From the NCBI GenBank assembly GCA_010909165.1, contig VJWM01000063.1, forward strand, positions 1,240,001 to 1,304,000: DNA of 64,000 bases. Direction: 5' to 3'. The stretch comes from Anthoceros angustus. Lineage: Eukaryota; Plantae; Anthocerotophyta. Below are positions 4,777 to 38,642 of this stretch, in pieces. The notes beneath the pieces were generated by a model that was given only the letters and a program-made list of their open reading frames with translations, searched no databases and had not been told where the DNA came from. A program made the translations under genes and the position numbers. How positions within the stretch are numbered: position 1 is the first letter of the stretch; each line of letters opens with the position of its first letter.

Positions 4777-6803
4777 TCACGAGTTGGGGCCTTGGTCGCG
4801 CGCTTGTCTCAGAGCTTCGATGCATTTCCTGATCTGCAAGAGGGTGGGGGGAGAGTGAGTTGGTGTCAGTACGTGTGATGGGCAGCGCAAAATGCGGGGT
4901 TGGAGAGGGAAGGCCAAGCACCTCGAACAGGCCGTGGTGCATTGCGCATGCTTGCTCGAACCAGTAGAGAGCCGAGTTGTAGTCCTTGATGGCAGCATAG
5001 CAGAGTCCTAGGCCTGCAGGCATGTGCCAGCGTTCTGGAGGTTAGGGTTTGAGGATGTGGGGAGAGCCAGGTGCAAAATGGTGCTGAGGTGAGAAGACGA
5101 ACCGCTCCGGGCAGCGAAGTGGTACGGGTTCAGTTCCAGCGTGGTCTTGCAGTCCTGTATAGACTTATCATAGTCCTGCCATGGAGCTTGGTTCAGTTCT
5201 CGGCTAGGTTGAGCAGGAACATGAACAGGACGATAGGGTTTGTGATAGGACGGCACTTACTCCCATGAGGTAGTGAACAGTTGCCCGCTTGTTGTAGCCT
5301 TCCGCAAAGGAAGGTGCCTGTTCTATTACCTGGGCAGGGAAGGGATGGTGAGATGATGAGGGTAAAGGAAAATGACAACGCTGCGAAATGGTGACAACCT
5401 GTGTGAAGATATCCCTGGCAGCAGCATATGTGTCTGATTTCTGAAGGAAATTGACTCCCTTCTGCACAGGAGGATTGGTTCCGTCTTAACTATCATGCTG
5501 CCGATGACAGCGGTCAGGGCAATTAGCTGTGAAGAGCTCACCTGAAGGAGTCCGTCTGCTTCAGGATTTCCTGAACGCATGAAGATTTTCCACAGTGCCT
5601 GAAACGGATTGGATGTGATCAGTTTGCACATCCACATCACACCAATGGAAATAATGGAGAGGACCTAAGTGCACCTTTTCTGTTCTGTACATGACTGCAG
5701 CATTGCTGTCCAGTAGCCCGGTTATCAAGCTCGATAGCACTCGTCCGTCTCCATGTTCTCCCAGTGCCTTCAGCAGCCCGATACTGGCGGTCAGCACACG
5801 AACTAGAAGGGTCCCAGACACAGGCAGAGAGGACTCTCCTACCACCGCAACTTACATCAACAGCTTCAAGCTTCTGGCTAAGGTCCCCTGTTTTCAGCTG
5901 ATCCACCTTCCGCAGCAGAAACTGGAAAGCACAGAGACAACAGTGAATAAAAAGTGTCCACCACCCAACAACAGGTGGCTGAAACACTACAACCCCCAGA
6001 CACAAGTGGAACTGACCTGCTCGGTAGGCGTTAGCTGACCCTTCAAATCCTCCAGCTGGTCCCGCAACCTGGGCAGAAGCTTTACAGCCATCATCCTTGA
6101 CTGCAATCGGTAGCCTATCTGTATGACACCGGTAGTTACCAGACCTACCTACGATCACTGGAGCAAGAGGTAACAAACATAGCAAGTGCAAGCACCTCTT
6201 CGCTTCTGCATAGTTCTCCTCTGATACCACCACTGCCAGCTGCCTGCAACACAGTCACATCAGGGAAACAACCACCCAAAATGTAATAACTCCAACACAG
6301 GAGCTGCATCCATACCTTCCCAACAGATATATTCGTTCCCACACATCTGCCTCCTCTACTCCCATATCCATGTCATGTGGCACAGCACAGAGCTGCTGCT
6401 ACAGTTTCAATTTTCAGTGAACACCAAGACACCACTTTCCAGGCTTCCACCAAAGACGCAACGCAAAAACACACCTTCCACATGCTGCCTACAGGTGCCG
6501 GTAACCTCATCACACCCATCTTCTTCTTCACCACATACCCAGCATAACCAGTGCTCACTGATGGTTGCTCAGATAGAATTCCTACAACAAACGGTGAATT
6601 CCGTGAACGTTACCCTCACTTCCAAATTGACTGTTTCAAACGACAGCCACAACCAGCAAACAACAGAGGGAAATACAAGGGTGCCCATTACTGGAGCCAG
6701 AAGATGTGCAGCTGACACAGGATACCCAATCCCCCATGGATGGAGCCATCCGCGGGGCACTCGTGAAGCCCATCTTCAGCCCAGATGTGTTGACGGCCGC
6801 CAT
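4777..6803 (-). CDS. UVR (UvrB/C motif) + HEAT-like + TPR protein, multi-exon, possibly plastid-targeted
   Basis: Hand-spliced: ...ERIYLLGRQLAVVVSEENYAEAKRLRDQLEDLK (UVR)...EAVDALGEHGDGRVLSSLITGLLDSNAAVMYRTEKALWKIFMRSGNPEADGLLQKG (HEAT-like)...VIEQAPSFAEGYNKRATVHYL..DYDKSIQDCKTTLELNPYHFAARSGLGLCYAAIKDYNSALYWFEQA (TPRs)...DQGPNS*. The 3' exons are solid. The 5' start (ATG 6803, MAAVNTSGLKMG) is tentative. Confidence 0.75.
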
Positions 6804-32256: not shown

Positions 32257-33990
32257 ATGGAGCCTGTGTCGTTGCTTGCACCAAGCACCAGTGTCGCATT
32301 GATGGTGGCAGACGACAAGGGCGCTGAAGACGCATCCTGTGCAAAAGACAAGAGAGTGTGCGCAGCGCAAGTGGGCCTGGAACAATCGCGGAGAGGCTGT
32401 TCCCTCGAGCCTTCCTTGCCAGAAGAAGCAGGTGGTTGGGTAGAGGTGTCAGCTGACGCGGGTGTTTCACAGGAAACTGATGGGACCTTGCGTAAGAAGG
32501 TGGCATTCAGCGTGCCTTTGGAGAGTGGCAAGAGTCAGAAGTCCGGGTTCTGGTCTGTTGTCAGGGACTCGTTGAATGCGGGGGAGACAAAAGGGGTGTC
32601 TGGTGAAGATGATAAGCAGGGCAAGGGCAAGGGCAAGGGGTTCAGCCTCGCCATGGATGAGTGCTCCACAGCCTTGAAAGCCTTGCTTGATGCAGGGCCG
32701 CCTCAGTGGATGCCTGATAGCGCTGCTTTCGCGTGTATGCAATGCGGTGAGTCGTTTCGGCCGCTCACTTGCGGCAGGCACCATTGCCGCTTCTGTGGGG
32801 GCCTCTTCTGTCGCTCATGCTCAAGTGCCCGCTGTTTGTTGCCTGTCAGATTCCTGACCAGGGATCCGCAACGAGTATGTGATAGTTGTTATGAGAGGTT
32901 GGAACCAATACAGGCAACACTGATGACCAGTGTGAGCAACGCTTCGCAGCTTGCCACGCATGATGTCACCGACTCTAGCTGCATGAGGGGTTGGGTGAAC
33001 AGCCCCTTAGGGCTATCAATGCAGCAAGAGATCTACAAAGCCACCAACACTCTCCGCAATTACTCTGACCAGGTGCTGCTTCCCATTTGCTCCCTTCCAG
33101 CACTGCCCTTCCTAAGCCACTTTTCCATGCTCCCTTCATCCCCCGGTGATGAAGATTCTTCTGAGCTTCAAGGCTACATTGCAGTGTTCTGCTCTCGTGA
33201 GCAGTTCTTCACCTATTTTGTAACTCTTACAGATCGGCAAGCTAGAACCAGAGAAATCGATACCTGACTCTGTGCTGAGAGGAGCCAAAGGACTGGCCAT
33301 CATCACAGAGATCAAAGCAGGGGTGGTTGTCACCTACAAGGTGGGCACTGGGCTGGTGGTTGCTCGCAGGGTGGACGGCTCCTGGTCTTCACCGTCTGCC
33401 ATAGTCTCCTGTGGGCTGGGGTGGGGACCCCAGGTGAACACGCCACCGTCACGCGCATCCCCTGCTCCCTGCCTCCCACATGCCCTAACTGCCACTATCT
33501 GTTGCAGGTTGGCGGAGAACTGACGGACTTCATCATCGTGCTTCAAACCAAGCGAGCAGTAAAGGCCTTTGGAGGCCGTGTCCACCTCTCCATGGGCGCT
33601 GGCCTCAGTGCAGCAGTCGGGCTTGTGGGTAGAGTCGCAGAGGCAGACGTGCGAGCTGGAGATGGCGGTGCAGCTGCCTGTTACACCTACAGCTGTAGCA
33701 AAGGTCTCTGAGTTCAGCGTTCAGGCCCGTCAGGTGAGCTACCGTCATCCAGCACCACAAGTGCGTACCACTCATTTCTTGCGTGTGATGCTGCAGGAGC
33801 CTTTGTGGGCTGTTCTCTGGAAGGAAATGTCGTTGCCACCCGGTATGCCATGAACACACGCTTTTATGGAGACCCGTGTGTCACAGCCCACGACATCCTC
33901 TTCGGGCCAGTTCCCAGACCTAAGGCAGCTGCACCCTTGTACTCAGTCCTTAACGCCCTCTTCCGTCAGGTCGACCTTGAATCCAGCTAG
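32257..33990 (+). CDS. FYVE zinc finger + Ysc84/SYLF actin- and lipid-binding domain protein (SH3YL1-like)
   Basis: WMPDSAAFACMQC...RHHCRFCGGLFCRSCS...RVCDSC (FYVE), then IPDSVLRGAKGLA...GTGLVVARR..GSWSSPSAI...GGELTDFIIVL...GAFVGCSLEG (SYLF). Four exons. Confidence 0.92.
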
Positions 33991-34359
33991 CAAGTGCCAG
34001 TCTTTTGCCAATTCTCTGATTGAACTTCCGGATTCTTCTCAGCCCCACAGGGAACCTAGGTTCTGGTCTTGTCAGATACAGCTGTCGGATGAAAATCCTT
34101 CCCATCGACCTGGATACACCACCTCTACATGATACATCTCTCGTATACATACTTACACACGAGGAACATACATACCCTAACAAAAGCACATCGTCCATTA
34201 GCGAAAAACGAACAAGGAGGGTGGCAATCATCTCTGTGTCTGTGCAACAACCTCAATCCGCTGTGCAATGCAGCCAGATGCGACCATCTCTGAAGCCAGT
34301 GAGACATGCTTCATGAGCATTATGAAACTAGTTACAGCTGCTGGCTACCTACTGGCTAG

Positions 34360-34656
34360 CTACTCCTTGGGAGCGGCAGCCGCAGCTGCAGTCTCGAGCT
34401 TGGGAGTGTCGTGGGACACATAAGGCTTGAAGCTGCAGGTGGAGAGATCAGGAACGATGTATTTGGGGAGCTTCTCCTCCATGAACTGGTAGCCTCCCTT
34501 GCGAGTGTGGCGGCCGGTGGAGATGCAGCCCTTGCCCTTGTAGAAGTTCTTGGGCCCTCTCTTGGAGGTGAGCACCTTCTGCCCCCTGGTGGGCACACGC
34601 CGCCCGATACCCATCAGTGCCTGCATCGCCCGCATCGCCTGCCCCAGCTGCACCAT
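34360..34656 (-). CDS. MRPL41: Mitochondrial ribosomal protein mL41 (yeast MRPL27 family), intronless
   Basis: LTSKRGPKNFYKGKGCISTGRHTRKGGY...PKYIVPDL...FKPYVS. Confidence 0.92.
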   Translation of the reverse strand: MVQLGQAMRAMQALMGIGRRVPTRGQKVLTSKRGPKNFYKGKGCISTGRHTRKGGYQFMEEKLPKYIVPDLSTCSFKPYVSHDTPKLETAAAAAAPKE

Positions 34657-34697
34657 TTCCCTCCTCCGTGTGCGCCAAACCCTACCGCAACACGGCG

Positions 34698-35375
34698 ATG
34701 GAACCGCAGCCGCAAGGGGAATCGGCAGAAGCCGCAGCGAGTCTAGACTTTTTTTCGGAGGATTTCGATCCCTTGCTGGCTCTCAAGACGGAAGGTTTGG
34801 AGCCCCCGAATCCCAGAGTTCGGCCACTGGACAATCTCAACAGGTGCAGGGCGATCCTTCCGAAAGAGGTCCCCGACGCTCTGGCTAACGCGCCAGCGAA
34901 GCAACCGCGGTCGGCGGAATCGGTGGCTGCGCAGGAGCGGGCTAAGGCTAAGACCTCCGTGCTGGTGGAGAAGGCGGCCGAGCGAGCGCGGCGGGTGAAG
35001 ATCTTGGACGTGCTGGCCGAGAAGCTGGAGCTGGGGCCGCTGTCCCTTTTGGTGGACTGCTTCCGGCGGCGGGGAAGGGTTCAGGTCTGGACTCGCCACG
35101 GCAAGGGCCCACGCGGCGTGCTCACGGGGTACCTCCAGGCCATGGACAAGCACATGAACCTGGTATTGCGGGATGTGGATGAGGAGTACACTGTGCGGCG
35201 GAGAGTTCCCAGGCTGGTCAGGGTTCGAGGTCGGGGCAAGGCGGCACCACTAGATCAGGAGGCCGAGCCGGAGATGGAGCTTAGACTCTTTCCCAGACTG
35301 GAACACCGCAGGAGACACTTGCAGCAGATTTTTCTCAGAGGCGACAGCATCATCATGGTGAGGAAGCTGGTGTGA
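34698..35375 (+). CDS. LSM11: U7 snRNP-type Sm-like protein LSM11-like, 225 aa, intronless
   Basis: N-terminal LDFFSEDFDPLLAL motif; Sm1 GPLSLLVDCF...RHGKGPRGVLTGYLQAMDKHMNLVLRDVDEEY; long insert; Sm2 RHLQQIFLRGDSIIMV. Confidence 0.82.
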   Translation: MEPQPQGESAEAAASLDFFSEDFDPLLALKTEGLEPPNPRVRPLDNLNRCRAILPKEVPDALANAPAKQPRSAESVAAQERAKAKTSVLVEKAAERARRVKILDVLAEKLELGPLSLLVDCFRRRGRVQVWTRHGKGPRGVLTGYLQAMDKHMNLVLRDVDEEYTVRRRVPRLVRVRGRGKAAPLDQEAEPEMELRLFPRLEHRRRHLQQIFLRGDSIIMVRKLV

Positions 35376-35979
35376 TAGCCGGCAGGCGATGTGAATGCAA
35401 TGCGAGAACCAGAGTCTGAGAAGCTTACTCCAGGGTGACAGCGTTCCCGTTGTGGAGGAAGGACCCTGCGCGGCTCCTTGAGCAAGAATCTGAGGCCGTA
35501 GTGGAGAACTTCTTCTGCTGAGAGTGTCTCGGAAGGAGGCTGGTAGTTTTGCCACAATGCGCCTCCTTTGATGATGGGAATGATGCGAGCTCGCTCCCAT
35601 CTAGAAAACAGCCACATTGTGGGAAAACGATCGGCATCCTACTGAGAAGAATTGGGAACTCGAGTCCGCCAGACCTCGCTGCTCTCCTACCCGCAAACTC
35701 GAACAGTGTGACTCGAGGAATTGTGAATTTACGTTTGGAGAGGCCGTCATTTTATGCCTAGGTCGCGGCTACCTCCTGCTCCCTCATCCCTAGTCCAGAC
35801 CAGAGCCCTAGGTTTAGTTAACTCTTGTACCCGGTCAAGGGATAGATAATCGATATGATTTTGTGATGTATGTACTGTCTCCGCTAGATTTATGTCATAA
35901 TAAATAAGGCCAAAAGTATTAGCACGGCAAGGCTATCGTCTTGAGAACGCTGATTTGTGTGTCTGTGGCGGGAGATGAA

Positions 35980-38642
35980 ATGGCCGCTATGACGAATGTC
36001 AGGGTGGCGTACGTTGCATCTGGAGCGAGTGTGATCAGGTGAGCAAGAGGGAAGCACTTTGTTGTCCATGACGAGGCGGTGATGGGCGCACAGGATTTTT
36101 TTGAGTCTTTGGAATGACGGTAGGATTCGTTCTTGATGCAGGGGGAGAGCAGTATGGAATCCTCAGCCTCGCATTTTGTTGCCGTGCAGCGGTGCAGCCA
36201 GGTTTGCAGCTGGCGGGAGAGTTTTGAGGCTGACTACCGAGCAGCGGCGGGGAGCGGGGGCTGTCCAGGCTGTTCGGCAGCTGGAACAATGGACATCAGA
36301 GGACGGCGAGGAGACATTGGAGGGGCGCGCAGCTGAACTCGCACGCAAGAGGCAGAGGGTTAAAGGTTGGCGGTGGTTGTTGCGGATGTTTTTGCAATTG
36401 TGGTGATGGTGGCATGATTTTTTTTCCCGGGACTGACAGTGCTGTGCTGCTTGTTTCAGCCCGGCTTAACAGAGGAAGAGGTTGGCCTACAAGTTATGAA
36501 CTTATGCAGGAGAAAATGTTGCCTGCCGTTATGAGCCCGAAGTCTGGAGCTCTTGTGAGATTCATCAAACAGCAGAGTGACATGCAGATGGTTTGGAGTG
36601 CTCTTGATTCCATGCCTCCAGGACACGAGTCTTGGGAGGATATCATCAGTGCAGCACTGGAGCTGAGGCGCCAGCAGGATTGGCCTCACGTGATTCAGGT
36701 GCGTGAGTAGCTGTGGCCCTCGTGGGAGGTGTTGGGTGTTACTGTCCTGCTGCATAACTCTGAATATGTTTGCATCTTTGCAGATATATGAATGGGTGCT
36801 TCAGAACAAGACTTTCAAGTATGACGTTGGCTGTTATAACCACCTCATCGAGGCATATGGAAAGAACTCTCAGATCAAAGAAGCGGAGAAGGCTTTCAAG
36901 TCAATGAAGAAGGCAAATTGCATTCCGACTGAGGGCACTTACAATGCTCTCATGAATGTGTATTCAAAGGCTAACATGATGGAGAAAGCAGAGGAGTTAT
37001 TCTATGACATGCAACGCCGTGGATACACTCTGGGTATGCCCTCTCGTGTGCATAACAGCACCCTACTTGTACCTCAGCTTTGCTATTCTTGCTAGTCTGA
37101 AGTAGGTTCACTTCAAATCCAGTGGGAGAGCGGTGTGAGACCATCTCTCGTTCTTGCTTTTCTGCCATCTAGAGTGCTACAGAAAGCAGACTATGGGTGT
37201 GGGGTTGTTTTGTAGCTTAGAATGGCTGTATAGACTCAAATGACATGATTATGATTGGCCAGGGGCTGTCTTTTCTCAGGAGTAACCACCTTCAACACAT
37301 TGCTCGGTGTGATGAGCAAACGTGGTCATTTTCACAAGGCGGAGCAGTTGCTCAGCATGATGCGGAAAGCAAAGTGCTCACCAACAACAACTACATTCAC
37401 ACTGCTGATCAATGCATATGGGAAAGTAAGGCTTCATTGCGAATTTCGCATGCTAGGTGTCCCCACTTTGAGAATTAAGCAGGCTGACCCTAGTTCGTGT
37501 GTGCCAGGCAGGCTTGCCACAAAAAGCTCAGCGCTTGTTTAATGGGATGCATACAGATCTCTGTGCCCCCGATATTTATGCTTTCACTGCACTTATGAAT
37601 GCTTATGCAAGGAGTGGAGATTGTGAGAAGGCCGAAGAAATATTTGCTGAGATGCAAAGGTTTGGCTATGAGCCAGACATATATGCATACAATGCTCTCT
37701 TGGAAGCCTACAGGTTGGAAAGTCTCTGACACCCTTTACTTTGTGCATGGACGTGGAGGGCTAGGGTTGACGCTAATGGGAACTGCTAACAGTTGCGATG
37801 GTCATCTGCCCTGTTGTCAACCAGTCGTGCAGGTCTTGCTGCTGGAGCATCTGAGGTATTCAGCACAATGCAACAAAGGGGTATCACTCCGGATCAGGTG
37901 TCTTATAACATCATGGTAGATGCCTACGGGAGGACGGGATCTTGTGCTGGTACGTGCAGACGTTTAAGTTGGAATTCCTAACTAGAGCATGAACCTTTTA
38001 AGGCAAATCTGAGCACTGTTGCGGTGGTATAGTAGAGTAGTTTCGCCTTCTGATGTACTGGGTGTACTCATGCTTGCAGAAGCAGAACGCATTTTTGAGG
38101 AGATGGCAAAGGTCGGCTTTAGACCAACGATGAAATCATATGTACTGCTGTTAAGTGGATATGCCAAATCAGGACGGCTGCCAGATGCAGAGAAGCTTGT
38201 GAAAACCATGGAAAGCTCTGGGCCGTCTCCTAATCTCATAGTGTATAACTGTCTTCTGAATGCCTATGGGCTTGCAGGAAAGTTTGACAGGATGGAGAGC
38301 TTATTTGAGTTCCTGGACCAAGGGACGAAAAAACCAGATATTACAACCCTTAACACTGTTATCAATGCGTACGGACATGCTGGTTCTGTGGAAACCGCAG
38401 AAAAAGTGTTTGCATCTATCGATGAACGAGGACTGAAGCGGGATGCAACCACTTGGACATCATTCATGGGAGTTTATGCTAAAAGGAAGCTGTTCCGAAA
38501 ATGCATACAGCTATTTGAGAAAATGGTGAAGGAGGGCTGCTGCCCAGACGCAGCCACAGTTAGCGTTCTCTTATCTGCATGCCGTAGCCCGGAGCAAAGA
38601 CAGGAGGTGTCAGAGTTGCTTCAACGCCACTCCTTCAGTTGA
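35980..38642 (+). CDS. P-class pentatricopeptide repeat protein, intron-rich (At2g35130-like from memory), likely organellar
   Basis: Transit-peptide-like start MAAMTNVRVAYVASG; SWEDIISAALELRRQQDW; about 10 PPR motifs (CYNHLIEAYGK, TYNALMNVYSK, AFTALMNAYAR, SYNIMVDAYGR, TWTSFMGVYAK); ends VLLSACRSPEQ...HSFS*. Confidence 0.9.

Follow-up and report, generated by a model that had tools for sequence, protein, structure and literature searches.

An intact, intron-less LSM11 orthologue in the hornwort Anthoceros angustus and its putative link to U7-type histone mRNA processing

The window analyzed here, a stretch of 64,000 nucleotides from Anthoceros angustus, carries a complete single-exon gene whose 225-residue product is, with high confidence, an LSM11 orthologue and not SmD2. 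The gene is intact, transcribed and under strong purifying selection, and it was inherited vertically through the non-flowering land plants. Derived from SmD2, LSM11 is the subunit that defines the U7-type Sm ring jointly with LSm10. In the textbook view, hairpin-ended histone mRNAs cut by the U7 particle belong to animals and a few algae, while plant histone mRNAs are polyadenylated; polyadenylation does hold for the land-plant mRNAs examined to date, those of flowering plants. According to our analysis, a role in a U7-type histone 3′-end pathway appears to be the best-supported mechanism for the hornwort gene, and we assign this reading a probability of roughly 0.6.

The open reading frame starts at an ATG at 34698 and ends at a TGA at 35373-35375, with 225 codons and 0 internal stops on the plus strand, exactly where the initial annotation had placed it (34698-35375). 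It lacks introns, and RNA contigs from a sister species are colinear with the window over 33795-35108. A second hornwort likewise encodes its orthologue in one exon (L001, 6001-6717). The protein is built of four parts: an N-terminal block, a long helix, an Sm fold, and an interruption of about 40 residues between Sm1 and Sm2 (Table 1).

Table 1. Features of the LSM11 locus and its neighbours, in window positions
Feature	Position	Strand	Basis or remark
Mitochondrial ribosomal protein gene (Pfam MRP-L27, 3.8e-21)	34360-34656	-	Head-to-head with LSM11
41-bp spacer between the MRP-L27 and LSM11 start codons	34657..34697	.	Telo-box-like AAACCCTA at 34677-34684
LSM11, complete single-exon CDS	34698..35375	+	ORF list and sequence; 225 aa + TGA
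LSM11_N-type motif block, residues 16-55 (LDFFSEDFDPLLAL...PPNPRVRPLDNLNRCRAILP)	34743..34862	+	Alignment to human LSm11 ~21-56
Predicted long helix, residues 73-110, between N-terminal motif and Sm fold	34914..35027	+	AlphaFold2, pLDDT 72-91
Sm1 part (N-terminal helix, beta1-beta3, DKHMN loop), residues ~113-164	35034..35189	+	Pfam LSM, model strands, Foldseek
Sm1-Sm2 insert, ~40 residues, with RGRG stretch	35190..35309	+	Alignment; pLDDT ~54 at residues 181-190
Sm2 motif RRHLQQIFLRGDSIIMV, residues ~205-225	35310..35372	+	Aligned to human RHINQIFIRGENVLLV
3′ UTR, at least this far	35376..35787	+	Same-species RNA contig 35318-35787 (X2 record 13); strand inferred
PPR-repeat gene downstream of LSM11	35931-37034 and beyond	+	RNA contigs, two species

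The Sm fold was recognized by Pfam LSM over residues 141-222 (E-value 8.7e-11). In the AlphaFold2 model it contains five strands, among them 127-134, 137-149 and 155-175, and the Sm core reaches pLDDT values of 85-95 in a model with a mean of 73.7. Within Sm2, the residues R206, R214, G215 and D216 do not vary across the family alignment, and the IFLRGD motif is present. The insert between Sm1 and Sm2 is modelled in large part as an extended beta3-beta4 hairpin, with a low-confidence loop of only about 17 residues. With about 40 residues it is the shortest of the plant family, where the other members align with inserts of about 55-75, and it is about twice as long as that of SmD2. The initial annotation had described a split Sm fold with a long insert. 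The split is there, with about 40 residues lying between the two halves, but the length is weak as an argument, the insert being the shortest in plants and far below the human one.

The N-terminal motif on which the initial annotation also relied proved more solid. FDPLLAL occupies residues 23-29 (34764-34784) within LDFFSEDFDPLLAL, which pairs in the alignment with LDVSSDSFDPLLAL of human LSm11, giving an exact identity over 7 residues at the equivalent position. Among 13 plant and algal homologues, F18, F23, A28, L29, L34, P37, L44, L54 and P55 are invariant. Pfam LSM11_N (PF28412) is recorded as a precomputed match on the orthologues, including a hornwort protein that is 73% identical. When the N-terminal half was used as sole query against the PDB, this short query returned no significant match; the weight of the motif comes from the 7-residue identity, the invariance across the family and the LSM11_N matches of the orthologues. 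Judged from the alignments, the N-terminal motif is a better diagnostic of LSM11 than the Sm1-Sm2 insert.

In animals, the N-terminal region of Lsm11 binds FLASH (PMC5636114). No part of the N-terminus is better conserved in our family alignment, from algae to gymnosperms, than the equivalent region, and FLASH-type binding, known for animals only, may by analogy extend to the hornwort block. Downstream of this block, the start of the predicted helix 73-110 aligns by position, with weak sequence similarity, to residues 107-118 of human LSm11, which form a helix holding CPSF73 (PMC12774660). On the model, the hornwort helix could be the equivalent of the CPSF73-contact helix. The hornwort protein keeps the first of these two animal elements clearly; of the second, it retains a helix in the matching place and no more.

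To assign the protein to a family, we compared it with PDB chains at several levels. As a single sequence (phmmer), it matched human LSm11 with an E-value of 1.7e-12 and the best SmD2 chain with 7.6e-6. A profile of 13 plant and algal homologues gave 3.7e-23 for human LSm11 against 1.2e-12 for the best SmD2, and the Sm domain by itself gave 9.6e-11 against 1.5e-6. LSm11 was ahead of SmD2 by 14-35 bits in every sequence comparison. A Foldseek search of the PDB with the AlphaFold2 model placed LSm11 chains of U7 snRNP cryo-EM structures at ranks 1-4, followed by SmD2 chains, and in the feature space of a protein language model its nearest neighbours were clusters of arthropod and nematode proteins with Pfam LSM11_N. 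The view of the initial annotation that this is LSM11 rather than SmD2 is therefore borne out: LSm11 comes first and SmD2 second by sequence, profile, Sm domain and fold. The assignment is one of score comparisons, the gene tree having been built without SmD2 sequences; an Sm-domain search for plant SmD2 sequences returned one hornwort fragment.

The closest sequences to the window protein are a Logan-assembled protein (P0001, 73% identity) and a transcript fragment from Nothoceros aenigmaticus whose Sm1 and Sm2 blocks are identical to those of the window protein. These nearest relatives are hornwort sequences, in agreement with the land-plant setting first proposed. In a maximum-likelihood tree, the window protein and P0001 are paired (support 100/97) and are sister to all other land-plant members, which come from mosses, the lycophyte Diphasiastrum, ferns and gymnosperms. 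Support for the clade of land plants is 94/88, and Chara, Mesostigma, Chlorokybus and the chlorophytes fall outside it. As the gene tree mirrors plant phylogeny, we take the hornwort gene to be vertically inherited.

No LSM11 from a flowering plant or a liverwort was found in two word-indexed searches that give source names. The same was true of those top matches that could be named when 1.84 billion representatives, clustered at 50% identity, were searched exhaustively with HMMER; many of the matches are unnamed. Named matches came from mosses, a lycophyte, ferns, gymnosperms, Chara, Mesostigma, Chlorokybus and many chlorophytes. This distribution is suggestive of a loss of LSM11 in flowering plants, not proof of it.

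The architecture of the gene differs between these lineages. In Ceratodon, the coding sequence of LSM11 is divided among about seven segments that span 3.1 kb (L003, 6001-9088), and in Diphasiastrum among about seven that span 4.3 kb (L004, 6001-10345). For the single exon of the hornwort lineage, either all introns were lost or a retrocopy took the place of the original gene. Several algae have the LSM11 module inside much longer predicted proteins, namely Chara braunii (P0044, 1247 aa, named N-acetyltransferase domain-containing by one source), Mesostigma (P0046, 804 aa) and Coccomyxa (P0031 and P0032, about 585 aa). Either genuine fusion or the merging of gene models may account for these long proteins.

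The neighbourhood of the gene is conserved as well. LSM11 stands head-to-head with the MRP-L27 gene, and the same pair is present in the second hornwort (L001, 5605-5892 on the minus strand and 6001-6717 on the plus strand). Since the second hornwort shares this arrangement, the 41-bp spacer suggests a conserved bidirectional promoter. The full order MRP-L27, LSM11, PPR is kept in the second hornwort contig, the one that encodes P0001. The PPR gene contains three GT..AG introns (36036-36138, 36364-36457 and 36696-36780) confirmed by RNA in two species, and their short lengths of 85-103 nt fit a compact genome of the hornwort type.

Comparison with the orthologue of the second hornwort (L001) gave a dN of 0.16 and a dS of 1.5-2.3, which is saturated, corresponding to a dN/dS of about 0.07-0.1. 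The lowest dN, 0.065, was found in the Sm1 region. Contigs from two sequencing runs (X2 and X3) were used as evidence of transcription; both are RNA runs, because the neighbouring PPR gene is spliced in them at its three GT..AG introns. In the same species, contigs cover 33769-34995 and 35318-35787, leaving a gap at 34996-35317, and contigs of the sister species, about 92% identical, cover 33795-35108, so that most of the LSM11 gene is covered overall. Expression is supported in an amount that cannot be quantified from these contigs, which are unstranded, the first being merged with neighbouring genes and the 3′ part having a low depth (about 5). As the contigs are unstranded, we infer the strand of the 3′ UTR. 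In a separate comparison, the window differed from the contigs of X1, a run labelled DNA from the same sample as the RNA run, at five positions (34874, 35264, 35448, 36462 and 36538), all five differences being C>T on the plus strand. Possible causes of this one-way pattern are bisulfite-type treatment, damage and strain SNPs.

What the protein does can be approached by analogy with the animal particle. In the mechanism that we favour, a seven-member ring would form on a short U7-like guide RNA, with the Sm domain in the place of SmD2 and an LSm10-like protein beside it. A FLASH-like adaptor would dock on the conserved LDFxSxxFDxLxAL...RPLDNL block and recruit the CPSF73/CPSF100/symplekin cleavage module. 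Ahead of the Sm fold, the long helix may help to retain the nuclease. The particle would then cut replication-dependent histone pre-mRNAs downstream of their 3′ hairpin. Ring partners, guide RNA, adaptor binding and histone substrate are what we infer from the gene, and the step from an LSM11 gene to a putative U7 pathway is a reasonable one.

Within the window, a six-frame scan for histone motifs detected no histone genes and a pattern scan detected no canonical histone stem-loop. Rfam gave no match in the window to U7, to the histone 3′ stem-loop or to another relevant RNA, either at gathering score or with E up to 10. A U7-like RNA would be short, with a guide at its 5′ end, an Sm site and a hairpin at its 3′ end. 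The Sm site of U7 snRNA is non-canonical; the spliceosomal type reads AAUUUUUGG. The plant snRNA promoter element TCCCACATCG occurred at chance level only, both in the window and in L001.

Work released as a preprint in October 2026 (bioRxiv 10.64898/2026.10.14.759114) reports that green algae and land plants have homologues of LSM10 and LSM11, that SLBP occurs in mosses and seed plants, and that FLASH is widespread outside animals. It also describes hairpins at bryophyte and gymnosperm histone genes, with a diagnostic GC pair and loop U, under a criterion that accepts any 6-bp stem with a 4-nt loop, with one mismatch, at ≤300 nt from the stop codon. Because this detection is permissive, the plant stem-loops are weak evidence, and we regard them as unproven.

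A broader proposal, which we hold to be rather doubtful, is that hornworts and all non-flowering land plants possess a complete U7-type particle. It would consist of LSM11, an LSm10-like protein and RNAs with an snRNA promoter, an Sm site and interchangeable 5′ domains that guide it to different histone genes, and the whole set would have been lost at the base of the flowering plants. If true, this loss would explain why flowering plants alone have purely polyadenylated histone mRNAs.

To understand whether the favoured mechanism is the right one, readings that dispute the identity or the function of the gene have to be weighed against it. One such reading takes the product for a diverged paralogue of SmD2, or for some other Sm protein of the spliceosomal or LSm type, extended at its N-terminus by unrelated sequence. 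SmD2 was indeed the second-best family in every search, as expected since LSM11 derives from SmD2, but the advantage of 14-35 bits for LSm11 holds in every sequence comparison, the Sm domain by itself included. The extension of 112 residues bears the LSM11_N motif, the language-model neighbours are animal LSM11 clusters, and the moss and Micractinium orthologues are named LSm11 in public sources, which together make this reading very improbable. Membership in SmD2 was considered on its own and rejected for a protein of 225 aa with a 112-residue extension, for which SmD2 always came second to LSm11. The least probable of the readings, in our estimate, is that the gene has no function, being either the intron-less remnant of a processed copy or an open reading frame that is not expressed. 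An intron-less hornwort gene, set against about six introns in moss and lycophyte, does have the look of a retrocopy, and the RNA depth is low. Against this stand the intact frame, the dN/dS of about 0.07-0.1 between two hornwort lineages at saturated dS, the conserved gene neighbours, the RNA contigs at both ends of the gene in two species, and the Nothoceros transcript fragment with its identical Sm blocks.

More serious, though still short of probable, is the possibility that the gene is a true LSM11 orthologue which no longer acts on histone messages, either forming a ring of the LSm10/LSm11 type on another small RNA or working with the cleavage machinery on other transcripts, while histone mRNAs in this plant are polyadenylated. 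Orthology and purifying selection demand just some conserved function, and the published hairpin evidence for plants is permissive. A precedent exists in a non-histone role reported for U7 snRNA in human cells, the repression of LTR12 elements and lincRNAs (PMC11417402). Yet the region equivalent to the FLASH-binding segment is the best conserved of the N-terminus from algae to gymnosperms, which argues that a role in recruiting the adaptor and the nuclease was kept. The chlorophytes that carry the same family (Volvox and relatives of Chlamydomonas) are the very plants with accepted hairpin-ended histone mRNAs. A histone-linked role is also in keeping with a family that seems to be missing from flowering plants, where histone mRNAs are polyadenylated. 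For these reasons, we retain a role in U7-type histone 3′-end processing as the preferred reading.

The initial annotation presented LSM11 in a land plant as a surprise, which it is not. The Physcomitrium patens protein XP_024359265.1 already bears the name 'U7 snRNA-associated Sm-like protein LSm11' in public sources, the Micractinium orthologue is called 'U7 snRNA-associated Sm LSm11', the family is curated in Pfam as LSM11_N, and the 2026 preprint includes land-plant LSM10 and LSM11. Literature that pairs LSM10/11 with Arabidopsis is silent on plant copies. Both the gene family and the idea of U7 in plants are therefore on record, and the window gene is not new. What the window adds is a hornwort member, the strong constraint on it, the apparent absence from flowering plants and the intron-less state of the hornwort gene. 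In hornworts, mosses, lycophytes, ferns and gymnosperms, a constrained LSM11 keeps the animal nuclease-adaptor motif, and our searches found none in flowering plants. This distribution suggests a pathway that persisted for several hundred million years before being lost.

Compared with known systems, the hornwort protein matches the LSM11 of other land plants and green algae (Physcomitrium patens XP_024359265.1, Ceratodon, Sphagnum, Diphasiastrum, Ceratopteris, Ginkgo, Cryptomeria and Micractinium), at 52-57% identity from end to end. These orthologues share its domain order and carry both Pfam LSM11_N and LSM. It stands apart from moss and lycophyte LSM11, whose genes have about six introns, by its intron-less gene and by the shortest insert of the plant family. 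SmD2 shares the Sm fold, the extended beta3-beta4 hairpin and the N-terminal helix, but is a protein of about 110-118 aa without the 112-residue N-terminal extension and without the LSM11_N motif. Human and animal LSm11 (PDB 6V4X, 8G1U and 9N96 chain D) is the best match in sequence, profile and fold. Like the hornwort protein, human LSm11 has LDxxSxxFDPLLAL at the equivalent N-terminal position, a helix ahead of the Sm fold, the Sm1 DKxxN and Sm2 IFxRGD motifs, and an Sm fold split by an insert. It is longer (360 aa against 225 aa in the hornwort), its Sm1-Sm2 insert spans about 130 residues against about 40, and the sequence of its CPSF73-contact helix (107-118) is not recognizable in the hornwort protein.
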